NCBI GenBank assembly: GCA_038496445.1
Contig: JALMLS010000321.1
Coordinates: 62,001 to 126,000, forward strand
DNA from: Trichosphaerium sp. ATCC 40318
Lineage: Eukaryota > Protista > Tubulinea
DNA length: 64,000 nt
Reading direction: 5' to 3'
A program made the position numbers and the translations under genes. Positions 952-64,000 of this stretch are shown piece after piece (position 1 is the first letter of the stretch; the number at the start of each line of letters is the position of its first letter). The notes under the pieces were generated by a model. That model was not told where the DNA came from, did no database searches, and saw only the letters and a program-made list of their open reading frames with translations.

Positions 952-1660
952 TATTGCAGTATTGCTATTTGACCCACGTTCCTTCAATTTTCATTAATCA
1001 CGTGATAAGAACCGTCAACAACTTTTTTTTTGAGACAAAAAAAAATACAAAGAACAAGTGCGTACTTTATTTTGTTTTGTTTTTGGTTTTGACGCGTTAG
1101 ATCCGCCCCTCGTGTTCTAAGAGATGTATTCAGTAAATAAATCGTTTAAAAACCGAACAAACTAGACGTACAGTTGCCGAATTACCGCGTCGGCGTGGAG
1201 ATTGTTTTTTAACGTTTGCGGTAATCTGAGATAAACTTTTGCCTGATTTTAACTCATTTTTACACCAATCAATCTCTTCAGCTGTTGGATTATTAATACC
1301 CTTACAAAATACGAATTATTTTCATATTTACGTCAAAACACAGAAAGATTCGAGTTTTTGACGTTTATTCTTCATTAAAAATAGTCTGTACCATTTGTTG
1401 TAGCATCTGTGCTACTGTTGATCTATCTCTAGACATTGCCGAAGTATTTTTTACCTGGCTAATGGCAAAATTCTAATGTCTAAGTTTATAAACTTGATCA
1501 TTCAATGAAACTGGGTTCCTCAACTAAAACCAATTTGCTTTGTTCTTGCCATTGTATAGCTTTTTTCCTCATTTTAAACATACTCCAAAGTGCGTACACT
1601 AATATCCTATTGACTCCCTGTAGCTGTCCCAATGTGCCCTTCCTCTGAGATAACACAGTT

Positions 1661-3353
1661 TTAGAGTGCTCGCGGGCTTTGCATTGCTCTATATGTGTTC
1701 TTATCTACTGTAGAGTATGGACTAACTGGTACCATCATAGGGTGCCATACTTTACCTTCGGGAAATGGTTATGACTGTAAGTAAATGAGCGCTTGTACCT
1801 GTGCGTTCACGAAAGTTCATAGATTCTAGTTTGTTTTCTTGCGGAAAATCTATTGGTAGGTTTGGCTCATGGTATTTTAAAGTACACCCTAAGCTATGCA
1901 AGTCACCCTTCCACCTTTTTAAATGATAAGTAATAGAAAGTAAGCACAAAAGGCATACCAGAATGGTATAGCGACCAAACAAACACCTACAAAAAATTAG
2001 AACTTATGTTAGAACTTATTTAAGATTCAGTAGGCACAAATCTTATTTTATCACGTGCCGTTGTCACTACATTTTTGAGCTTTTTCAATATCTCTCATTT
2101 TTCTTGTGTCAAGATTAGAGCGATGCGGAATAGCATCAAAGTAGTGTTGTTCACCTAATCGATCTTTAACTTGGTGTTTTGGTAACAATATGCTTTTGTA
2201 CCTTGATACTCAATCGCCAAGTTGTAGTCTACTACGAATATATCAACTACCAAACTCCTTCCTGATGAGTCTCTTGAACCTATAGAGAGTTCTTGGACGA
2301 TCGTGGAACCAGGAATTAATGTTTTAACGCTCTGAAAGAGCAACCTTACCTTGTTATTGTCGTTTGATAATAGTAGAAATAAATGTACCTTTGTTGAGCA
2401 TTTTTTGCTATCGCTGTAAACTTTGTCCACTCCCAACTTGTATTTGGTTCTAATGTTGCTAGAGCAGATGGAAAATATTTAAGTACGCCTACACCACCCA
2501 ATCCAATGATCTGGCGTGATGATATAGCGTACCAACCATTTGGTGTGTCTAAAACAAACATTACAAAAATGACAAATTGTAGCAATACAACATACTTATG
2601 CCAAGTGTCATTGCAGCACGCTTAAGAAACTTTCTTTGGTTGCTTTTATCAGACCAATACCCAGAAGGAACTGTTACTCTTGTATTAAAGCGCCAATCAT
2701 GCGTTGGGTATGTGTCCTTTAAAGCAGCTGCCATTGATCCATTGTACCTGCAATAACACTAAGTTATCTCACAAAACATACAAAATTTGTACTTTCTAAG
2801 GAGATTGTGACCTCCTTGCTTGTGCAATTGTACTGTTTTTACTTCATGCCAACCATCAAGATCCTTGACATTTAGACGCCTGGCAATCGTATTTAGAATT
2901 AGTCTCTCATGTGCAAAGTCACGTTGTAGGTCAGAACTGTAAAACCGTTAACTTTTGTTAACAATGAGAAAAAACAATTACCTAAATTTCCATTGGTGCC
3001 AGTTGTACTGAGGGTAAATTGCCTGAAAACACGAATACATATTCCCCTTGTATAATCTACGCGAGCGCTATTAAAAAAAAGCAATTCGTTGCGTTTTGAC
3101 GTTAAGCTTTCTTTTTTTTGTTGTAAAATGCGTGCTTACGCTTTTAGAATATCTTTTCCACCATTGTTGTAAATATCTTTCTTTGTTGCTCTGTACCAAG
3201 CATCTGTAGTACATATACGAAGTTTTGGCGCTACGACAGTATCGAAAAAATGTCGTTGGTTGCTTATAACACCTTTCTTGCAATTTAGCCGTTTGTTAAC
3301 AAATACCAATGAATACGGGTACCTTGAGGTGCTAAAATGCGTAGTTTATGCAT
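1661..3353 (-). CDS. Trp-rich ~70-aa tandem repeat protein with C-terminal PD-(D/E)XK-like (DUF559/Vsr-like) nuclease domain
   Basis: Multi-exon. About 3 repeats of W..NQR.F...A..L.I.....WY......I...GG..L..Y....L...YP...W, then LVVDIFVVDYNLAIEYQG|EQHY...RDIEKAQKC..NG|VCLVAIPFW. 5' end uncertain. Confidence 0.7.
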
Positions 3354-3502
3354 TGCGAGTTGAACAGGACGCTACAACGACAGAATAAGCAGATACTGAA
3401 AGTCATGCGAAGTCTCTGAAAAGCACATTGTTGTAAAAACGCAGTGGTGTGATGGCCTAACGTAAAACATACGAAACGGGATTAAAAATTAGTAAATACA
3501 AA

Positions 3503-6500
3503 ATGGACAACTTGAGATTTGGGTTAGAATGCGTTGATAAGGTTCTAAACGAACCAGAACTTCTAAAAGAAGACTCAGAAGAGCTTGCTGAAGAAATAAA
3601 GAAAACTCTGAAGGGTCTGTACGATTTCGGTACGTACACGCACTACTACGCCTATTTCGATGCTTTCCAGTGCGACATATTAAATAATATTATTATAGCC
3701 AAACAAAGCGAGACAACATTCACAGGATCGCTCGGAGAGCTCGATGAGCTATTCGTAGACGGGTTAGAAATTGATCAAGTTTGGGAAGAACTGCAATTGC
3801 GTAACGCTCCTCTTGACGACTTTTTAAAGACACAAATCGGTTCCTTGAAGAAAAAAGCTGATTTAAACATGATTAACTTCTTTGCTGATGTTGACATGAG
3901 CAAATTCATGGGCGTTGACGCTGAAGCAATCGCAGACGTACGTTCTTTTTATGATATCAATAGAAATCAGCCTAAGAGCGTTTTAAAACAAATTGTCTTC
4001 AATTGAAGTTTTTTTATTTTATTTTCGATTTGTTTTGTTGTCACGTGATTGAAGCCTTGTGGGCTTTGATGTTATATGTTCTAATATTTTTTAAATAGCT
4101 TGTCGATGGATCTGAATCTAGTGGAGAATCTGAAGAGAGCGATGAGTCTGATGAGGATAAAGAAACTTCAAGAAAACGTGTCAGCTTTGCTGAGCGTGTT
4201 AAGCAACGAATAATCCCAAACCGTTATGGTGATGGCGAAGGAGGTGAAGAAGACAGAGTAGGCAGACTAAATCGTGAGCGAGAGGATAAAATTTCAGATG
4301 GCCAGGAAGACGAAACTGAGGTTTGCTTTTTTTTTCAACAATTTGAAATTGGAAAAAAAATTTTGACACATTTCTGCCTTTCTTGACACATATTTTTTTC
4401 CGTCGATTTTTCGTCACTCAAATGGCTTAATTTTTTACTCTTCTCATAGGAAGACATTGTTGAATTGTATGAAAATATGGAAGACTTTTTGGACTATCAA
4501 GCCCGAAGAGACAAAGGAGAGCTTGAGTCCGATGATGAAGATTGGGAAGAACAAGAAGAAGCTGATTTACTTATGTATGGTGATTCCAACATCAAGACAT
4601 TTGACAAATTTGAAGGAGGTAAATACTACGAACATAATCTTACAATTTTTTGAAAAAAAATCTGTTCTTTTTTCTTTTTTTTTTCTTTCAATTTATACGC
4701 GCACTACTCGCTTAGTCGGCTTTCTCATAAATTGTGCAGATATGGATGCTGAAGATAAAGAACTTGAGAAAGTATTCCAAGAGACATGGGCTTCATTAAA
4801 AAACACAGAGCTTAGCTCTGATGACGAAGATGAAGATGAAGACGCTCCTATCTACTATGAAGATTTTTTTGATCCAATTGGAGAGCCTAAACAGCCTCGT
4901 GATGATATGGACGTTGATGATATGGGTGATATGACTGATATAAGGGAGGAGCGCCGTAAAGAGCGCGGAAATGTAGATTTAGAAGCCGAAGAGGCTGGTC
5001 TCCCAGAGTTCGGTTCTATGAATGGTAGAGATGCATTGATTGCTGATTTATCTGGTGCTGTCGATGATGACCTTGATGAAGATGAGTTAGAATTGGAGGA
5101 GGATGAATTACCACCAATGTCAGCTTATGAGATAAAACAAGCAGAAATGCAAAGGAAAATAGGTAAGCGGATCTCAAACAATTGTTTCAAAGATCTTCCC
5201 TTTGGTTGGGTTGGTGAGACGTTTTTCTTATTTTTTTCTTTAAGAGGAGCTTGAAGAAGCAAGAGAGATACAAAGAGAAAAGGATTTACAACATGAAGAT
5301 GATGATAGATTCATAGAATCCGGATATGAAGCTAAAAAACGAAGGTTGCGTATGCAAATCGCTGAGCTTGAAGATGAGATTGTAGCAGAGAAGCCTTGGC
5401 AACTTACGGTACGTATACTTATAATTAAACCATTCTCACATCTGTTAGGGTGAAGTGCAATCCAGAGAGCGCCCAAGAGACTCTCTTCTAGAAGAGCCTC
5501 TTGAATTTTCAACAGCTGGAAAGCCTGTACCTTCAATTACTCCAGAGTTTACTGAAAACCTTGAAAGTATTATCAAAGAGCGTATTAGAGATAACGCTTG
5601 GGATGATGTTATACGAAAGGATGTAAGTGTACCCCAGCGTTACTCGTTTAATGCATTTGCTTATTCTGCGGTTATTTAGCCTGCACAACTTGATAGAAGA
5701 CAGGACGCTATAGCTCTTGATCACCAAAAGTCAAAGAAAGGTCTTGCTGAGGTTTACGAAGACGAGTTTATGAAGAAGAAAACAGGTACATAAAAGAGAC
5801 AATCATTGCTTTTCTTGTAGCGGCTTTCAGCTTTTGGACTCCAAAAACACAAATTACTAAGATTGTTGGTATTCCATGTACTCGAAACTAATACCTTTGG
5901 TAGGACAGGATTTGATGCAACGTGAGCACGAAGACGAAGTTATAGAAAAGCAAAATAAGGCCGTAAAGTGCGTAGTCTACTTGCAAATTGTCAATTTTCT
6001 ATACTTTCTTACATTAAACCTAGAATGCTCAAGAGTTTGTTTGCTCGGTTTGATGCTTTGGCTCAACTATCTTTTGCACCTGTACGTTCAAAAAAATCAT
6101 ATTTTCTTTTTACCCTTTTTTTTTTGTCGTTGAAACTCACTGTGTACGTAGATTAAAGTCAAAGACGATGAAACACAAGTTAAAAACAGAGATGCAATGG
6201 AAGTTGAAGAAATTCTTCCTGTGGCAGAATCAGAAGGAGCACGTCTTGCACCTGAGGTAAATACTTGAGTAGTTGTAATAAGAAGAAAACTAACAAAACG
6301 CTTTTAGGAAGTATTCTCAAGAAACAAAACAACTTTGTCCCAAATGGGCAAATCCGAGCGAACACGCGAGGATAATTCAGCTAAACGCAAGAGAGACAAA
6401 GCGCGGGTACATACAGTTGTTATTAAACAATACAGAGCATTAAATGTTATATTAAGGCGAAAATCAAAAACAAAGGATTCAAGGAAAGACAAGCAAAGAA

Positions 6501-51934: not shown

Positions 51935-54334
51935 ATGCTGTTCATACTACTATTGCTAGTATCCAGTAGCACCTATGCTTTACGGGTATACGACGGAACT
52001 GACAGTTTCCTTACACACGCTGTTTACAGAAAAGCTGTACAGTCTTGGAATAACGTAACAGGTGCGTCTATCGTATTTGAACGAATTGTATCGCGTGTTT
52101 TGTTAACGTGTAGATTTTAGGACCTCTCGCTAGGTTTGATATGAGTTTCAACGTGACTGGTAGCGTTCTTATAGGGCCTGAAGGCTATAAAAGCATGTCT
52201 CCCGCTTCAATGGCGAAAAAAGCAAAGGACCTTGGCGCTATCGGTTTAATTATCATAGAGAGCTTTTGTACGTTATTTTCACAGGTTGAGAATGTTTTCA
52301 CAAGTTTACGTTTCCATTCGAGTCATGTATTATAATACAAAGCAGTATTATACTACGGAATGCTTGAGCGCTGAGAGCTTTTGTTTCGTTATCAACAATT
52401 TACTAACTCTCGTCTACAGCCACTGAACCGGGCTATATTGTTGACTACGGTGCTACGAACGTCCAAGAAGATACAGTGCCCACAATAACTGTTGCGCATC
52501 ACAAAGGGAGTAAACTCGCAAACAACTTGAAAGAACAAGGATACAACGCTACAGTAACATTCGAGTTTACAAGCACGTTAATTCTCTCAATTCAAAAACA
52601 GTAACTGCGCTCAAAATATTTTTTCCTTTTCGGAAATAACGTTGTAGATTACATGTTGTATTATAAGCTAATACTGTAATAGAAGAAAACAGATGGTTAG
52701 ATATCGCTAATTCGCTAGCGTGGGTGAGAAAACGAGAAAACAAAAAAAAAAGGCCATAAAATTGCTTACAAGCTGTTGTTTAGGTTCTTGGTTTCCAAGT
52801 ACTTCATGGTGCAATATCTACTATACTAGTTGCGTATTCCATTATAAAGTTATACACATTTGTTTACGCGGATGGTATTAATATCAGATCTATTGCACAA
52901 GAGACTCTTGTACGTCTAACAACCTTCCGTTTCCCCGTTTTTTGTAAACCGTTACTTATTTTATCTACGCGTAGTTTGCAGAAGTATTTACAAATATACG
53001 TACGCCCTTGGTAATAAAAACACCAAAGCCAGTGATGAAAGTCGCAGAAAAAACAAAACTAAACTTCGCGTAGTGCGTTTATTATTTGTGGTGTTTTGGG
53101 CCAACTCACCTTCTGATAACCCTTTAATAATATATGATAAATGGGTTGTTGTATCTGTGCTCGTAACACCACATTGGTATATCAGTTTGGCAACTACATT
53201 ACTCATTACAATGTACACCTTTTTTTGATGAATACGTATTTTATTATGCGTTTACTAAGCTCCCTATGCAGTTACTGGTTCGAATTGACTTTGGCTTTGA
53301 AAGTCAAAACTATTACGTCAACTACGCAATTGTACGCACCGTTTATGTGCGCCATTGGGTTCCTGTGTGTTGAATGGGTGGCTTTCTTGATAGTTGGCAA
53401 GTATTTACGCGTTGAGTTTGTATTAACATCTTTCCAGCACTGCTGTGGCAACCAATTGCAATCACAGGCCTAATAGGAGGTGGTCCGTACGCAGCTACTC
53501 TGATGGCTATCACAGTCTTCTTCTTTTATTCTGGTAAACGTATGGTGTCGGATTTACGACGTATGCGTGAGAGTAAGTTAGCAAATCAGCTTAGAATGGT
53601 ACGATCCTTTTGTTGTTGCGTGAAATTTGCTAACAAAAAGTCAACGTATTTCTACTTCTTGTCACTTTATTCGCGTAGCGTCATTCTTACTTTTTGCACA
53701 GACATCTATATTGGTACTGTGTAGTGGCGGTGTTAACATGCTGAACCTTATACTACTCACTGTAGTAACACCCTCATTTCTATGCGCTTGCGGGCCAGCT
53801 GCCAGTCCTACTGGTTGGTTTATTTACTGGTGGTTAAACGTATTCCTTTTGGAAATAACCAGCGCTCTACAAATATCAGCGTTTACTAGCGTTGACAATT
53901 CTCGTGCTGTGAGCAGAAATGCATCATCTTCTTATTCTGCATCTGTTTGTGACCGCTACGCGCCAACTCAACCAACTCAAAACAATCAAGACTCTAGTTC
54001 TGAGATCTCTAGCAAAGGTGGTGAAGATACGAGTACAACGAGTAGAGCATTAGATATATCTGCTTCCTCGTCCTGCGAGAGCAATGAGGTTGTAGATATG
54101 ACGAAGAAACGTCATGAAATAGAGATATCTGCTTCTTGCTCCTACGTAGAGAGCATGGAAGTTGTAGATATGACGAAGAATCGTCAACAGGTGGATGGAT
54201 CTACTAGTAGATCCAATGGTACCTCTTTAAAGGCAGTGGAAACTACACAAAAACGTCCATCTCTAGATATATCTGTTTCTTCCTCGTCTTCCTTAGAGAG
54301 TATGGAAGTTGTAGATATGACGAAAAAGAAATAG
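51935..54334 (+). CDS. Signal peptide plus PA-like domain plus multi-pass (7TM-like) membrane protein with Ser-rich repeat tail
   Basis: Signal peptide; AKKAKDLGAIGLII (PA-like); about 7 hydrophobic segments; cytoplasmic tail repeats. Confidence 0.65.
54051..54331 (+). repeat. About 70-bp imperfect coding repeat (LDISASSS.ESMEVVDMTKKR) x4
   Basis: Recurrent GATATATCTGCTTC...GTTGTAGATATGACGAAGAA units. Confidence 0.8.
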
Positions 54335-54565: not shown

Positions 54566-57500
54566 TTAAAGAGGAACAATAGTACACTTCAGACCATCAT
54601 TCCATTGCTTGTATTCTGGTGTGTAATATAAAAACGCACATGAAGAAGGACCTGTGTAACTACCAGGAACAGCAGCCTAAAATCATTGTAAATAAAGCAC
54701 ACCTTTAAAAGCAACTTGTGGCTCTGTCGTACCTTGACATCAATTTGAATTGTTGATTTTTGTTTTGGATCCATGCCACGCCAATACAGAACAACCTTTC
54801 TACCAATCACTTCATAGAAATCAATAGATTCACTCTTGACGAGCTCCTATCAAAGTACGTCAGTAAACAATACAAAACCACGTGATATTCTTCATGTGGA
54901 ACAGCAATACCTTTAATTTCTCATGGCGAGGCTCAAGGCCTCCTGGAAGTCCAATGATTGCGATGACCATGGGCAAGTCAGTATCTTTTTTATTTTCGAT
55001 ATCGACTTGGATTTCACCAGTCTCTCCTTCCTTGATTGACTCTGGCTTCATTTGAGTTGCAATTGATATTGCGCATTCATCAGAAGAAGGTCCTTTCAAT
55101 GAAAAGTAATTGATATTCACATTGTATGGTATGTTTCCTGATCCCTTGGGCATAGTTATTTTGAATTCGTGATTGCCAGGCTTGAGTTTTTGTGCAGCTT
55201 CACTGAAATCTACAAAAAAACCGAAACAGTTAGTTGGTTGGTTGTTACACATCTCAACAATTGTCTAGTACCAAGAGATATAGGTTCTACACTTGTAGTA
55301 GACATTGTCGTAGATATTTTGACACCACCAATAGTCTAAAAAACCCAAGTAAGGTCACAGTTTAATAGCTAGAACACAAAGTAAAGAAGAAAATAAATAG
55401 AAAGTCGCACAGCAACTATATTGATATCCTCATTTGTTGGATTCTTGTTCATTTGACCGTATGTGAATATAGCACGAAGAGCTTGAACAGTTGATTGTGA
55501 TGTACTCCAAGATCCATTTGATACTTGAGATTGAAGGTATTTCATTCCTGCTTGGATGTTTGATGAGTACTTGTTTGGATCATCACGCAACCATCCAGTA
55601 ACTGCAAGACCAGTTGTTTCAACAAATAGGGATTGTCCATATGACCTTACAATGGATGATGTGCCGCCTTCCACCTTACCATCTACAGATCAGGTTAGGC
55701 GATAAAGTCAATCAAGATGCGATGACAAAGTTCGACAAGGAGACTATATGCTTACCTTTGGCTTGTTTTGAAGCTAGATAGTCACCTGCTTGACATGCAG
55801 CTTTCTTGTTCTTGGCGTTGTTGAACGCCATGTACATGCATGCCCACACGTATGAATTTTTGTTATCAGATAGGGCTTTACCTTGAACATCAAGTTCCTT
55901 TGTAACGTCATTGGCAGCACCAAGTTCAGTGAGGCCATAAAGACAGTATGCTGTAAACTTTATTAGAAACAGCCAGTGAAATGGGTGTACATACCATTGT
56001 TGACGTCTGTTGGAGGTGAAGAGAAGGCATAACGACCATGACCAAGTTGGAAGCCTCCTTTACCATCTTTACGTGATAAAAGCCAACTCTTGGCTCGATT
56101 AACAAGTGCCTCGTTCGCCCCTGATATTCATGTTTTGCGTTAAGGTATGGCGGATCACCGGCTCATGAATCATTGACTTCATACGGATTAATGATGCTTC
56201 AAGATCTCGGTAAATCAATGGAAGGTACGTATAAGAAACAAATACCATTGTAGCCAAGTTAAAACCATTGACTTTGATTCATAGTTGATAATAATCTTTT
56301 TTTGGAGAGCACGTTGATTACCATTCGAATCCTGATGTTTTCTTTGTTTCATATCCAACTATTTTCTTGTATCCAACCATCATTTTACTGTGCATGTCTG
56401 AAATCAACGATGGATCAACGCCAACTGTGCCATCATTGAAGAACATGCCAGCCATAGCCATTGGATATAGTGTTGATCCAACTTGTTCAAAACATCCACA
56501 AGGTGTACGAATCATACCCTTCAGAGCTCTTTGAAAGTTGGCTGCATTTGTTGGTAGGATAGACACTTCAATACTTAGCGTATTGGGAACTAAACATAAC
56601 ATGTTAGATGCAACTGTTTGAAACACGCGAAGAGCGAAGTGCGCCAAAACAGCCTAAAATTACAACTTACCATAATCGGGCAGTATGTTGAACGTGTGCT
56701 TTTCTGTTTTACTCTTACTGATAGTACCACTTGCAGATGCTTCCAATGGGAATCCCTTGGATACAGTGTAAGATACTTGTGATACTCAAATATTGGTAAC
56801 GGTACCTTTGGTTGAATACGAACACTGCGAACAATATTGTCTTCACGCTCACTTGAAGTACCAACGACTTTGAGCTCGCTTGTGAGTGGTACATTCTGTA
56901 TATCGATTGGAATAACAGCACGTTCTATGAACAAGTTAGGTTCACATTAGTACTAGATAAGAAAACGCTAGAGTGTAAGTGACATACGTCTCTGTTCTGG
57001 TCCAAGTGTGACTCCTTTTCCTTTGTTTGTTTCTGGATCCAAAAGAAAACCATCTCCACCCCATACTTCGAATCCAACGTTTGTGATTTTATGTCCGGTG
57101 TTATTGACCATGAGTACAGGTAATTGTACTTTGTCACCGCAAGATACTTCGATTGGCACTTTGAGATCAACAGAGAAAGGTTCCTTGCAAGGAACAAGCC
57201 TTTTTAATAATTAAGTAAACAAAAGTATTTGATGAGCAAAAGATAACGTACAACTCATTGTAGCCTAGTAGATGTGCATGATGAACAGAATCACACATGA
57301 CATTAAAGCTTGTGATACTGTCATTCATGTCAAACTCAAAAGAGGCAAAACCTGTACAAGTTCAGTGAGTGCTATAAAAAAAAAGGTACATACCAAACTT
57401 ATCGGTGACTAATCCTGCATTCCAGTACAAAGTCTCTTTGAATTCAGTTCTGCAAAAGAAGAAAAGTAAGCTATGCAATACATAAAAAAGGTAAGTAATT

Positions 57501-60500
57501 GGTACCTGTCACCATCTGCTGTAGTAGGAGGCCTGAAAGGGAAAAACAAAAAGTCAGTTAAAGTCAGGAAAGGTTAAAAAAATGAAGTTGCATACGCGGT
57601 AAATGAGAACACCCTAAGCATCTTAGGTATGGGTTCTTTTTTTTGGTCTAAAAACCCTAAAAGGTATAAATAAATCGTCCATAACATGTCAACTACCAAG
57701 GTAACTAGATAAGCTAAAACGAGACTTGGGAACAGCCTCCCGTGCTATACTAGGAGCTGGCATAGACCTCATTCCCATGCTAGAAGGCATGCTTTGGTCT
57801 TGCATTAACATCATTTTAGAAGACTCTGGCCGACTTGATATCTTTGAAACCTTCTTCCTAGACTTAACCACTGGCTTTGATGCTTTCTTCATTGCCTTGG
57901 TTGGTTTGGGTTTTGGAGCAGAAGCCACAGATCTTACAGATGTACTCTGAAGCGTAATGCTTTCTGGAATGGCGCTATACTTTACTTTTGTGACGAAGTT
58001 ATAACCGTCATCTTCTTTCATGTAACAATCATATGGATTCTAAAAAGAAGGCTAATTAATTTCAACGTATTTCTCACTATGAGCCTTTTCAACATACTTC
58101 TTCAATCTCGGGTTGCTAGAACAACAAAAGTTAGTTTTGTGCACAGAAAAAAAAAAGCAAAGTTTAGATTGTGATTGCGTTCTTGTTTTTTTTGAGTTTG
58201 ACTTACACCAAGTTTCAATCCAGGTGCGCAAGCTACAACTTGTTGTGCTTTAGATCCATGTTCTTTCATAAAAGCTTCAAGATCCACTTTGTTTTTTACA
58301 AATACAAGTTTTCTCCAGCCCTAAAGTGCTTGTGTTATTATTTGTTTTCAAAAAAAACACCTTCATTTGCTTCTATATGGTTGCGTACTTGAGTGCCGAG
58401 TAGTAAATCAATTGCTGTGTTTCCTTTCTCATCATGTTTGAGGTATACGTGGGCATCGAATAGTTCTTTGACTTCACCTTCCAAGTAAGCCATTTCTTGC
58501 AATCTAGGTGCCTTTTTTCGGTTCTAAGCAAAACATTAGATTACAGTCAAGTTCTTGTTTTATTCTCATCCTAATATTAGCAAAAATAAACATACTTCTA
58601 CCATCTCTAGAACTGAGTTATCAACAACTGTAGTTCCAATAGTCGCATCTCTATATTTATACATGTTAATCACGCCAACAAAACACAACCGCAAATTCGA
58701 AAATAAAACATACGCAAGAGGTTGTCCGTTTTCTCCTGTTGCATACAATAGAACACGAACTTTGTTTCTTGGTGCATACACACCTCTTTCAGGCATGATT
58801 GAAACATTGACATGTTTGGATGGTTGTCTAGAACACGTGATTAGAAAAAAGAAACGAAAATGGTATCAACAAACCTGTAAACAAGTCTTTCAGCAACAGC
58901 AAGTCCAGTTCTCATCTCATAAGCAGTGACTCTAATTACACCTGCTGTTGATGTAGGAGGTGTAAAGAACAACTTAGATGCCTTCTTTCCCGTGATATCG
59001 ACTTTGATAGAGAGAATCTCAGTGTCACGTTTAAACAAACCAACATAATAAGCACCAGGTCCTAAACAACATCAGTAACATAATTATAGACTAACACTTG
59101 AACTCACGTGTTGTCTGAAGTGTCATCTCGATGGATGTATCAGTATTGACAAAGGCACCTTTCTTTGTGTTCAACACAGCTCCTGAAGACTCGAACAAGC
59201 TCTTATAACAAATTAGACACAAACAAAGGTTGAGAATTGTACTTGTTCAAGATAGATAAGGTTATCAACACCAGCTGGTTTTAAAATACGTAAAGCATAT
59301 TTTGAACCTTGTTTGGGTTTAAATGATAATTTACCACGTCCTTCATGTTCAGTCTTGAAAGCAGTAACTACTTTACTAAAAACAATAGTTAGTGGTATAC
59401 ACTACTAACAAAATAAACACGTGCCCACTTCTTGCTATCACCAACTCTCCTTCAATATCTCCAGGATCTCCAGATGGTGTGAAGCATTGCAAGTATAATC
59501 CACATTGCAATCCGTAAATAAGAGAACCTGACTCTGGATACATACGAATATCGAGTTTCTAAAGCAATTTAAGAAAAATCAGAGTGACTCCATTGGTACC
59601 TTTAGAAGAATAGGAATCGTTTTAGCAGTAGACTCTACACTACCTCCATCTTCAACAACGAATGTCAAACTGCCTTCACCAACCTCAATCTTGGCAGGAA
59701 GGTCAAAGCTGACCATACAATTTCCATCAGCGCCAACACTTGTGTCGCCTCTATCATTGTGGTTAGAGAAGTCTTTTTACGAGAAGTCTAGTACCTGTAT
59801 ACTTCAGAACCATCAACACGTGCAACTGCGTTCACTTTGGCGCCAACTGGAATGCCACCCTCAACACGTGAAACCTGGAAAGAAGGTTAGGTTTGTAGCT
59901 GTAAATTGAAGACATACAGTGAGTGATGCTGAAGCTTTATCTCCTGGTCCAAGTCCTTTACGTAAGAACTCAGCTTGTAAGTTAAGCTTTGGTGGCTGGT
60001 ATTCTCGAATATCAAATTTTCTTTCCTGAGTTACAAGCACGCAGTCATTTGCCCTAAACAACGTGTTAGATTAGTTGGTTTTTTTTGAATGGTTTGAAAA
60101 ACAAGTCAACGCACATTCCAGCATCAAACTGTATTGTATACTCTCCACCTGCTTTTCCTTTTGGTATCTTCCACTGATGAGCAATGCAAGTCATGCCTTT
60201 GTTCTGGTTTTCGCCCTTGAGAGTAAATTCGTTGGAGCCTGTTGAAAGAGGGAGCAAAGTGAGCATGTGGTAAGTCAAATAGTTTAGTAACATGTAAACC
60301 AAGCGTTACCTGAAGGTCCTGTTATCTTTCCGTTAATCTGAGTAAGATTCATTACATCTCCTCTCAGAGGTTCAAACGTATGAGCATCAAGGTATGTGAC
60401 TATCAACAGATAATTAGCCACAAAACTTGATGGCTGCAAATTTGCTGAGAAGAAAAACTTACCTCTAATCCAAACAGTTTCTTCTGGTTTGTACAACGGT

Positions 60501-62101
60501 TTATCTGTAGATACATATCCAATATATCTCTTTTTAGCATCTATGTTATAACTAGAAAGCGAAGGAGTGACACCAAGAGTAAGAGAAGGTAGTGACGTTT
60601 CAGCTATTAAAAAAAACATTATACTTTAAAAGTTTTTGGAACAAAACCAACTTCTAACTTCAGCTTACCTTCAACATACTTAAACGGTGTGTAAATACCT
60701 CCTGTGGTATTGATAGTAACAACAGAATAGTGATCGAACCCAACAGTTGGATAAATATCTCCTTTCTTTGGCAAATCAAAGGTGCTTGTTACAACCTTTT
60801 CACCGTTTTTTGTCCAGAACAATTTTTTGCCTTGAATTCCACAACCGATCACATCACCAACGCCAAAAGTGTTCTTTAGAGATTGAGGTTTCTGCTCTCC
60901 ATCATAAAAGACTAAATCGAACATTCAATTGCAATACGACTCAAATTGATAGAGAATAAGGAAAGAAATCGATCGCCTATACGTACTATCTCCATCGTCA
61001 CTGTGGTATCCATAACTACCTTTCACCCATCCAGGGAATTTAGTGTCTGTAGGGAATGACTGTAAAGCATATCCCACGCCCACAACGCTATCATAAAAAA
61101 GTGAGATAATTGAGTAGTAACTCCATAAAAGTAAGAGTACCCAGAATCTCCTTCTCGTTTCATACTGACAATGGACACTTCAAAGTACTTCAACGAGTTT
61201 AGGAACTGTACTGCGTGTTCACCTCCGCGACCTGTCTTAGTTGGTCTTGAGCGTATAATAGATCCATTGACTATTGCACTATCACCATGACGTGTTCCTA
61301 TCGCCAAAAGGTAAACAAGAAAATAATCACGTGACTAGAAATAGAAAAAAAAGTAATTAAAACTCACGTTCATTGTAAATCAGAGGTATCTGTAGTGTCC
61401 CCGTTGTCACAGTGAGCGCAGCTTTGTTATCGGCACCAATACAAGGGAATAGGCGAGGTCTAATAGATGGAGGTACTTTCTCAGGTGATTTACCAACTCG
61501 TTCTCCATTCAATGTCCTTTTAAACACTTAGAACATCTTCAGACCTTGAAATAGTAATCGTACCAGAATACAGTGCCATCTGTCTCTATACCACAGCCTA
61601 CAACTGAACCCTCACCGTACTTTGTTGATAATTCAGAAGCAATATCATTAAAATAGCTCTTTCCACTTTCACCGTGGTAGCCCCATGAACTAATGGCGAA
61701 TAAACGGTTGCTTATCAAAAGATAACGGTTTTACTCAATTTTAAGGTTAAAACGCACTTTTTGGCCCAACCTGGAAAGTCATCAGTCAATCCAATGTCTT
61801 TTGTTGCGTATCCAATGGCACAACCGCTATTTTAGTCACCCATTAGATATTTTTACTAAAACTGATTGGTACCCTTCTCCTTTATCTCCTACGTGAAGTG
61901 ACTTTATGTTTACTTCATAATACGCGATATCTGCAGTACAGAGTTGAAATACCTTTATTTATCAACAAAACATCCTCAAAACGCTATAAAAGAGTGTCTT
62001 ACTTGTTCTGTGCCGGCTTCTTTGACATTTACAGATAATTCAACGGCTTTTCCGCTTTCAAGCTTTTTAACAGAGTACGCCAAGCTTTGGCGTGTACTCA
62101 T
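54566..62101 (-). CDS. Thioester-containing alpha-2-macroglobulin-family protein with two N-terminal SPRY domains, no signal peptide; one exon inverted
   Basis: SPRY x2 (YYEV..GCAIGYA..FPGW..SWGYHG; YFEV..YGYHSDDG..GDVIGCG), VSTDKPLYKPEETV, DLLLGTQ|GWR, ETLYWN, thioester PCGCFEQ, STVQALRA, MVIAIIGLPGGL. Confidence 0.9.
56145..56224 (+). other. Inverted exon of the minus-strand thioester-protein gene
   Basis: Plus-strand ...TTAAG|G-TAT-GGC...ATG-GAA-G|GTACGT encodes (W)YGGSPAHESLTSYGLMMLQDLGKSME(G), exactly bridging the minus-strand exons ending SGFE-TG (56322) and starting GG-ANEALVNRAKSWL (56120). Confidence 0.92.
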
Positions 62102-62418
62102 GGCTATTAGTTGCTTTTTAATAGCTGCTTTTTGGAAGTTGTGGTCCAAAACCACTTTTGAAGCCCGAAAACCGAAGACACTGACTTTTTCAGTTGGATT
62201 TTCAAATAAACTGATTAATAGTACCTTTTGTGTATGATTGGTTTGATTGTTTTTGGCTTGTTACCCCAAGTTTTGTGTTGTCACGTGCACAAAACAACAA
62301 AATAGTTTGAGAAGATTCATTTGCGCTTACGTTTACTGTGACATGGCTAGGTTGCTCAGTAAGTGCGAAATTTTGCTCTGAAACAGTTTACCGTGATAAG
62401 AACTTGACACGTGAACAC

Positions 62419-62542
62419 TTTATTAATAGCAGAAAGTAATCCCACAACTACGTTTCCAAAGGGGTACAACAGTGCCACTTGAAATACTTGGTTTGGCTGG
62501 TACGTTCCATGGTGGTAAAGAAGACGGTATATCGCTCCATAT
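62419..62542 (-). pseudogene. Dispersed inverted copy of the last exon of the GH-A glycosidase gene
   Basis: Reverse complement matches 33075-33210 (TCTTCTTTACCACCATGG..TACCAGCCAAACCAAGTATTTCAAGTGGCA) with substitutions and indels. Confidence 0.85.
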
Positions 62543-62685
62543 TACCAATTTATTTTTGCAGCACCAGCGTTAAGTGTAGTAGGAGGCAGTTGTAGGGATT
62601 GGACCAAGGTTAACAATAAAAAATAACATTGTTTTATTTTGTGGATTATAGAATAACGTAAATCGTCTTTAATTTAGTAACAGTT

Positions 62686-64000
62686 TTAAAGAGGAACAAT
62701 AGTACACTTCAGACCATCATTCCATTGTTTGTATTCTGGTGTGTAATATAAAAATGCACATGAAGAAGGACCTGTGTAACTACCAGGAACAGCAGCCTAA
62801 AATCATTGTAAATAAAGCACACCTTTAAAAGCAACTTGTGGCTCTGTCGTACCTTGACATCAATTTGAATTGTTGATTTTTGTTTTGGATCCATACCACG
62901 CCAATACAGAACAACCTTTCTACCGATCACTTCATAGAAATCAATAGATTCACTCTTGACAAGCTCCTATCAAAATACGTCAATAAAAATCACGTGATCT
63001 AATAGCAATACCTTTAATTTCTCATGACGAGGCTCAAGGCCTCCTGGAAGTCCAATGATTGCGATGACCATGGGCAAGTCAGTATCTTTTTTATTTTCGA
63101 TATCGACTTGGATTTCACCAGTCTCTCCTTCCTTGATTGACTCTGGCTTCATTTGAGTTGCAATTGATATTGCACATTCATCAGAAGAAGGTCCTTTCAA
63201 TGTAAAATAATTGATATTCATATTGTACGGTATGTTTCCTGATCCCTTGGCCATTGTTATTTTAAATTCATGTTTGCCAGGCTTAAGTTTTTGTGCAGCT
63301 TCACTGAAATCTACAAAAAAACCGAAACAGTTAGTTGGTTGTTACACATCTCAACAATTTCTCTAGTACCAAGATCTATAGCCTCTATGCTTGTAGCAGA
63401 TACTGTCTTAGTGACTTTGATACCACCAATAGTCTAAAAAACCCAAGTAAGGTGAAAGTAACAAGAAACAACAAAACACAACAAATGAAATTGAAATGTT
63501 TGCCGTACCGCAACTAGGCTAATATCGCCGGTATCTGAAGTCTTATTCATTCGACCATATGTGAATATAGCACGAAGAGCTTGAACAGTTGATTGTGATG
63601 TACTCCAAGATCCATTTGATACTTGAGATTGAAGGTATTTCATTCCTGCTTGGATGTTCGATGAGTACTTGTTTGGATCATCACGCAACCATCCAGTAAC
63701 TGCAAGACCAGTTGTTTCAACAAATAGGGATTGTCCATATGACCTTACAATGGATGATGTGCCACCCTCTACCTTGCCATCTAAAGATCAGGTTAGGCGA
63801 TAAAGTCAATCAAGATGTGATGATAAAGTTCGACAAGGAGACTATATGCTTACCTTTGGCTTGTTTTGAAGCTAAATAGTCACCTGCTTTACATGCAGCT
63901 TTCTTGTTCTTGGTGTTGTTGAACACCATGTACATGCATGCCCACACATACGAATTTTTGTTATCAGATAGGGCTTTACCTTGAACATCAAGTTCCTTTG
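62686..64000 (-). CDS. 3' part of a second, tandem thioester/alpha-2-macroglobulin gene (continues beyond window)
   Basis: High nucleotide identity to 54566-55901 including introns (offset about 8.1 kb). Confidence 0.92.

Follow-up and report, generated by a model that had tools for sequence, protein, structure and literature searches.

Thioester proteins such as complement C3, alpha-2-macroglobulin (A2M), the insect thioester-containing proteins (TEPs) and bacterial A2M are textbook extracellular or periplasmic traps, and every thioester macroglobulin characterised to our knowledge acts outside the cytoplasm. Here we analyse a gene on contig JALMLS010000321.1 of the amoeba Trichosphaerium sp. 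ATCC 40318, contained in a stretch of 64,000 nucleotides (nt) referred to as the window, which a preliminary description had presented as coding for a cytosolic thioester protein with two SPRY domains fused to a bacterial-type A2M. The gene, named copy A, is the downstream member of a tandem pair in a lineage-specific gene family; its twin directly upstream (locus L001) is named copy B, and a third copy, the paralog on contig 21 (L002), copy C. The predicted family product has about 1,700 amino acids (aa): a short N-terminus of hydrophilic character is followed by two RanBP9-like SPRY domains and then by a full CFEQ thioester macroglobulin running from the first macroglobulin (MG) domain, MG1, to the C-terminus. 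We lean slightly towards the reading that A is a copy broken by an inversion and that its intact twins encode an intracellular, SPRY-docked covalent trap or tag.

Several described systems resemble parts of this product. Animal thioester proteins (alpha-2-macroglobulin, A2ML1, TEP1, CD109 and C3/C4) belong to the same superfamily and share the presumed mechanism of bait, rearrangement and CxEQ thioester, but they are secreted, disulfide-rich and SPRY-less and carry GCGEQ, and a PDB sequence search with the thioester exon of copy A returned only A2ML1, at E 0.44. The usual "bacterial A2M", the enterobacterial type represented by YfhM/ECAM and Salmonella A2M, is likewise a large MG-domain thioester protein; YfhM/ECAM-type proteins are lipoproteins with CLEQ. 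Bacterial CFEQ A2M-like proteins, annotated as "A-macroglobulin complement component" or "MG2 domain-containing protein", share with copy A 35-39% identity over the macroglobulin part, the order MG2, A2M_BRD, A2M, TED_complement and the CFEQ motif, while they differ in having signal peptides or anti-sigma zf-HC2 domains with membrane anchors, in lacking introns and SPRY domains and in forming a separate tree group. Signal-less protist macroglobulins, known by annotation only (for example Anaeramoeba ignava KAJ5074214.1), are colinear with copy A from MG1 to the C-terminus (33% identity, E 5e-155), carry PxGCFEQ, have no signal peptide and stand on the same side of the tree as the amoeba genes; they differ in being about 1,400 aa long and SPRY-less, and most start with a myristoylation motif whereas A and B start with MS.

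For the second SPRY domain (SPRY2), the nearest solved structures are those of RanBP9/RanBP10 of the CTLH/GID complex (E 1.7e-4) and of SPRYD3 (E 4e-3), all of them cytosolic or nuclear proteins sharing the core GDVIGCG...F(W/Y)TKNG; they have no macroglobulin part, and the likeness is one of sequence only, with no sign of common ligands. The CAGE complex (bioRxiv 10.1101/2025.09.22.677704) contains a very large protein with MG-like beta-sandwiches, whose bacterial members have signal peptides and whose unicellular-eukaryote members are intracellular. Its family is another one, with about 2,300 aa, a fold described as novel and no mention of a thioester; the comparison is an analogy only. A full-text literature search returned no description of a SPRY-macroglobulin or of a cytosolic protist thioester protein.

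Gene structure and domain content of copy A

The gene model was derived from the three paralogs A, B and C and corrected with RNA joints; domain calls were made exon piece by exon piece, and the joined protein was used for alignment, for the comparison of non-synonymous and synonymous rates (dN/dS) and for trees. Copy A lies on the minus strand with its ATG at 62101 and its stop at 54566-54568, and the minus strand between these positions consists of short open pieces split by GT-AG introns of 41-81 nt. The model contains 39 exons, counting an inverted exon of 80 nt, and 38 spliceosomal introns; the part from the ATG to 56322 (31 exons, 1,289 aa) is free of stops and the part from 56111 to the stop comprises 7 exons and 389 aa. 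The features are as follows.

62003-62101, minus strand: exon 1, start codon and 33 hydrophilic residues (MSTRQSLAYSVKK...), without signal peptide
61368-61952, minus strand: SPRY domain 1, exons 2-5, Pfam SPRY, introns backed by RNA joints
60669-61297, minus strand: SPRY domain 2, exons 6-8, Pfam SPRY above the cut-off
58207-60603, minus strand: MG1-MG6 region, exons 9-22, Pfam MG2, colinear with relatives
57596-57979, minus strand: bait-like region, Lys/Ser/Pro-rich and of low complexity, with indels between paralogs, exon limits uncertain
56988-57532, minus strand: A2M (MG7) domain, starting with the conserved TEFKETLYWNAG motif, Pfam A2M, RNA joints
56322-56589, minus strand: thioester exon (exon 31) with the CGCFEQ codons, last exon ahead of the break
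56112-56291, plus strand: inverted segment of about 180 nt (limits +/-2), strand flip relative to B and C
54566-56111, minus strand: rest of the thioester domain and C-terminal domains, 7 exons, the first one without acceptor
62686-64000, minus strand: 3' end of twin gene B, intact and transcribed, continuing beyond the window

RNA contigs were compared with window positions 56230-62229, a range that ends short of the left breakpoint and the last exons. Spliced contigs in three runs (X1, X2 and X6) gave joints confirming 15 introns; run X2 comes from the assembly's own strain, while X1 and X6 come from another strain and show mosaic A/B letters. The intron at 59376-59424 is GC-AG and is backed by an RNA joint. 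A GT-AG alternative 21 nt upstream would lose 7 conserved residues.

Both SPRY domains of the preliminary description were recovered by Pfam on separate exon pieces. The piece at 60622-60924 matched SPRY (PF00622) with E 7.4e-8 and 32.9 bits, above the gathering cut-off of 26.3, and the SPRY1 piece at 61542-61730 scored 25.6 bits (E 1.4e-5), just under it. In the macroglobulin part, MG2 was matched on the exon piece 60287-60625 (E 7.4e-4, below cut-off), A2M (PF00207) in 57361-56971 as two adjacent pieces (14.4 bits for profile positions 13-50 and 19.1 bits for 53-86, where the whole-protein cut-off is 21), and TED_complement at 56321-56653 (profile 3-81) and 55372-55689 (profile 252-312). These scores fall below the Pfam whole-protein cut-offs because a single exon holds only part of a domain, and the full-length relatives exceed the cut-offs for MG2 and A2M. 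Pfam gave nothing usable on the middle exons (57692-59776) or on the inverted exon.

The MG2, A2M and TED parts are assigned to the family because of their colinear alignment with full-length relatives. The model aligned colinearly with an Anaeramoeba ignava protein of 1,403 aa over its residues 44-962 and 994-1400 (E 5e-155), and with a Corallococcus protein of 1,395 aa over residues 48-565, 684-974 and 1005-1393 (E 3e-106, 2e-52 and 4e-75, respectively). The MG1-MG6 region showed 39% identity to Corallococcus residues 48-565 and was colinear with the Anaeramoeba protein P0002, model residues 346-881 were colinear with relatives having MG2 above the cut-off, and the identities of the C-terminal part (54566-56111) were 36% with Corallococcus (residues 1005-1393) and 34% with Anaeramoeba (residues 994-1400). 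The colinear full-length alignments therefore indicate that residues from about 346 onward represent a complete macroglobulin from MG1 to the C-terminus, and the first 345 or so residues appear to be an added SPRY-SPRY head.

Copy A thus carries the MG series, the A2M (MG7) domain and the CxEQ motif of the A2M/C3/TEP superfamily, and lacks the secretion signal that is a trait of its characterised members. PCGCFEQ was found in the thioester domain of copy A (CGCFEQ codons 56500-56483), and P-x-G-C-F-E-Q is invariant among 19 aligned family members; together with the full-length colinear similarity, this motif places copy A in the CFEQ-type family. The MG domains and the thioester motif of the preliminary description are therefore present, but the thioester is not intact as had been claimed: positions 56112-56291 are inverted, and an uninterrupted thioester domain was found in B and C and not in A.

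A bait-like stretch of low complexity, rich in indels, was located at the expected place ahead of the A2M domain. Model residues 881-978 in this stretch had no homology to the relatives in the alignment, no RNA contig covered the region, and comparison of A and B gave 18.5 non-synonymous and 2.5 synonymous changes, a dN/dS of about 2 from a small number of sites. Large A/B indels extend over window positions 57596-58206, where exon limits are uncertain.

The SPRY and macroglobulin parts were found to form one fused gene, as the preliminary description had it. The reading phase is continuous through conserved GT-AG introns from SPRY into macroglobulin, the SPRY2 and MG1 exons being separated by an intron of 65 nt (60604-60668), and an X6 contig of 214 nt (record 12) placed 182 nt on the last SPRY exon and apparently about 32 nt on the first MG exon; this bridge was read from the depth table, and the joint itself is not among the listed joints.

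The inversion in copy A

Comparison of gene A with B and C by blastn revealed a strand switch only at 56125-56291, and alignments put the two breakpoints, with a tolerance of 2 nt, at 56111/56112 and 56291/56292. The flipped 180 nt contain 33 nt of intron, the 80-nt exon, the intron behind it, and the acceptor plus the opening 7 nt of the exon after that. The 80-nt exon, which follows the thioester exon and encodes YGGSPAHESLTSYGLMMLQDLGKSME, now lies on the plus strand at 56145-56224 with its frame still open. When the segment was turned to the paralog orientation (a projection only), all splice sites were AG/GT and the frame was free of stops. One surplus base was present at the inversion junction and no inverted repeats were found at the breakpoints.

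Two ways of rescuing copy A were considered and rejected. Splicing that omits both affected exons loses 203 nt and with them the reading frame, and use of the closest cryptic AG (56111/56110) does not keep the frame either. The product as assembled would therefore end about 55 residues past the thioester motif. All other exons and splice sites of copy A are preserved. The A/B comparison gave a dS of 0.117 and a dN/dS of 0.21, and codon changes polarised by C were 47 synonymous and 20 non-synonymous on the A lineage and 46 and 25 on the B lineage, with no sign of relaxed constraint on A. Since all else is preserved and constraint is unrelaxed, the inversion is either far younger than the A/B duplication or an error of the assembly, and copy A is probably a very young pseudogene, the newly dead twin of a working neighbour.

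Transcripts of the assembly's own strain were those of the twin: the listed X2 pieces all differ from A at exactly the positions and in the number expected for B, and the X2 transcripts are therefore assigned to B. One X2 contig departs from the window sequence at 56319 and continues into the 80-nt exon in normal orientation with B's letter. A further contig of this run stops matching at 62110 and runs into a SMART template-switch oligo (TSO), which places the 5' end of the B mRNA about 11 nt ahead of the ATG. A second TSO junction of run X2 lies inside the gene at 57280 and points either to RNA breakage there or to a transcript that starts internally, ahead of the A2M domain; the 5'-end mark is therefore good but not absolute.

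Paralogs in the genome

Thioester and C-terminal exons matched six loci on five contigs, and among these the SPRY2 exon was found only in the SPRY-SPRY-macroglobulin copies A, B and C. The other forms were the following.

Contig 14 (L003), about 1200-3834, minus strand: one SPRY joined directly to the thioester domain and C-terminus
Contigs 6 and 33: SPRY-less paralogs, beginning MAAVKALLNMFG

The contig 14 paralog has neither MG1-6 nor bait, and its thioester motif has decayed to CGSFEH. In the trees the SPRY-bearing copies formed one clade inside the amoeba clade, a topology that would fit a single SPRY fusion in the amoeba lineage. The start codon of paralog C was located at L002 8392, minus strand, and opens a myristoylation-type MGTRQS, where A and B start with MSTRQS.

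Relatives and phylogenetic position

An exhaustive search with the thioester exon yielded 379 proteins at E <= 1e-3, nearly all carrying CFEQ; none of the matches covering most of the exon exceeded 48% identity, and 55% was reached on one fragment of 61 aa. Named eukaryotic members were from Anaeramoeba ignava and A. flamelloides (seven from the genus), Gefionella okellyi, Cantina marsupialis and Andalucia godoyi. All were signal-less, and an MGxxxS/T start, the N-myristoylation consensus, was present in seven of the ten distinct proteins (P0002, P0158, P0020, P0159-P0161 and P0046). A scan of bacterial genomes gave at least 580 loci, mainly in Myxococcota, Planctomycetota and Melainabacteria; the bacterial family open reading frames (ORFs) of 1,350-1,450 aa mostly start with a hydrophobic, signal-like segment, and some bacterial relatives have anti-sigma zf-HC2 heads. 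No SPRY domain was found in about 30 long or top-ranked matches of the exhaustive search, nor in the best 120 word-search relatives, as judged from their precomputed Pfam lists.

One signal-less Anaeramoeba ignava protein, KAJ5074730.1 (P0027), carries at the bait position (residues about 640-1180) five ubiquitin repeats ending in LRLRGG, which sit about 80 residues ahead of the A2M domain. It may act as a trap for deubiquitinases, or its gene model may have been merged.

Phylogenetic trees were unrooted, were constructed from labelled rows only with quick searches, and were flagged for composition bias. A branch separated 10 eukaryotic from 41 bacterial sequences with a Shimodaira-Hasegawa-like approximate likelihood ratio (SH-aLRT) support of 99 under LG+G4, and the same branch received 92 under LG+C20 with 20 bacterial rows. 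The phylogeny against bacterial relatives, proposed earlier as a check, thus went against the bacterial-type label, with the amoeba genes lying in a protist group. When the Corallococcus family member was compared with PDB, human A2M (3e-28) was retrieved before TEP1, CD109 and C3, and no ECAM-type chain appeared at E <= 1e-3. An NCBIfam search with ten exon pieces and three full-length relatives matched no family, and Pfam bMG3, bMG5 and bMG6 gave no matches on the window exons, so that neither the bMG domains nor the ECAM kinship of the YfhM/ECAM type was found in copy A. The PDB, NCBIfam and Pfam results together with the tree split therefore leave "bacterial-type" valid in the sense that the CFEQ family is mostly bacterial, but not in the YfhM/ECAM sense.

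Signal peptide and cellular location

The preliminary description had noted no signal peptide, and we arrived at the same result. A hydrophobic core is absent from exon 1 (33 aa, MSTRQS...), and across the whole model the Kyte-Doolittle value stayed at or below 1.0 in every 19-aa window. Conservation among A, B and C begins about 15 nt ahead of the ATG. The 585-nt spacer upstream (62102-62711 scanned) holds five short ORFs, two of them mildly hydrophobic (19 aa each), and an upstream signal-peptide exon was rejected, given the shortness of these ORFs and their lack of conservation in B and C. The adaptor at the 5' end of twin B, about 11 nt ahead of the ATG, leaves no room for such an exon. 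An intracellular location is further supported by the named protist relatives, which are signal-less and mostly start with MGxxxS/T, and action of the family proteins in the cytosol seems well supported by these sequence features.

Proposed function and alternative explanations

The mechanism that we propose for the intact twins would begin with a protein made in the cytosol, without signal peptide or membrane segment, which its SPRY pair would dock to a target or a partner. Once the fast-evolving bait region is cut or bound, the usual macroglobulin rearrangement would follow, and the exposed Cys-Gln thioester would bond covalently to nearby molecules. The result would be a trap or tag working inside the cell, with proteases or effectors from prey, parasites or viruses as plausible targets; the immune role of the preliminary description, "recognise and covalently tag", is a conjecture.

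Several points weigh against an inversion-broken copy with cytosolically acting twins. Among the listed contigs of the assembly's strain no transcript was assignable to copy A, a TSO can join broken RNA ends, as the internal junction at 57280 illustrates, and the stability of a thioester among cytosolic thiols and amines is a concern. With its dN/dS unrelaxed, copy A is as compatible with an assembly error at 56112-56291 as with a very recent event, and we regard such an error as unlikely, though serious enough to be reckoned with. To the same degree we doubt the wider form of this explanation, in which the inversion is an artefact or a minor allele and copy A in the organism is an intact, working third member of the family: it agrees with the undamaged 80-nt exon on the plus strand, with the integrity of every other exon and splice site and with the dN/dS of 0.21 and lack of relaxation on the A lineage, but the segment lies deep within a contig of 229 kb and both its breakpoints are clean, a combination not usually shown by artefacts, the extra junction base resembles real rearrangements, and the listed RNA contigs of the assembly's own strain all correspond to gene B.

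Returning to the trap or tag encoded by the intact twins, its place of action could be questioned in that the family proteins might act outside the cytosol as ordinary macroglobulins, by non-classical export or by delivery to phagosomes or the medium. All characterised thioester macroglobulins known to us are extracytoplasmic and the bacterial family members bear signal peptides, but no signal peptide or membrane segment was found in the model, the SPRY type is that of cytosolic RanBP9/10, N-myristoylation motifs recur in the protist relatives and paralog C, and one relative has a polyubiquitin bait, so that we consider this improbable. It is far less probable still that the SPRY and macroglobulin parts are two neighbouring genes misread as one. 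No single RNA contig spans the whole gene and the contig that bridges the parts reaches only about 32 nt into the MG1 exon, on a depth-table reading; against this, the 65-nt GT-AG intron preserves phase in A, B and C alike, the parts are not separated by a stop, a start or a gap, and the order SPRY then macroglobulin is common to the three copies and the short SPRY-TED paralog. Recent acquisition from bacteria or contamination, which would make the missing signal peptide uninformative on the site of action, we hold to be the least credible alternative: the similarity of the thioester exon to Archangium (49%) is about that to Anaeramoeba (44-46%), but 38 spliceosomal introns interrupt the gene, the six paralogs are spread over five contigs, and the eukaryotic sequences stand on one side of a branch supported under both models. 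The SPRY-macroglobulin genes accordingly do not look like a recent transfer as judged from introns and trees.

A broader reading, which we put forward as tentative and on balance doubt, is that the family is a branch of old, protist-wide intracellular thioester macroglobulins forming a cell-autonomous complement-like system, in which the signal-less and often N-myristoylated proteins, one of them with a polyubiquitin bait and those of the window's family with a SPRY-SPRY recognition head, would covalently trap invader proteases, deubiquitinases or other effectors inside the cell. If so, an arms race would have left its traces in the tandem copies, whose baits change quickly, and in the recently inactivated member. 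An intracellular SPRY-bearing family, if confirmed, would extend thioester chemistry to cell-autonomous defence or proteostasis and would bear on the origin of complement-like immunity. Copy A should not be annotated as an intact gene unless the inversion is checked, and B or the contig 21 copy is better suited to experiments; the intact/broken pair at dS 0.12 is a natural control for studies of expression and selection.

Neighbouring sequences

Just downstream of copy A, on the plus strand at window positions 53627-54334, a Ser-rich open frame with two copies of an ...EVVDMTK... unit was observed. Upstream, a block of 118 nt (62422-62539, about 320-440 nt ahead of A's ATG) was 89% identical to a block at the same position upstream of B and was not present upstream of C; it is probably part of a duplicated promoter.

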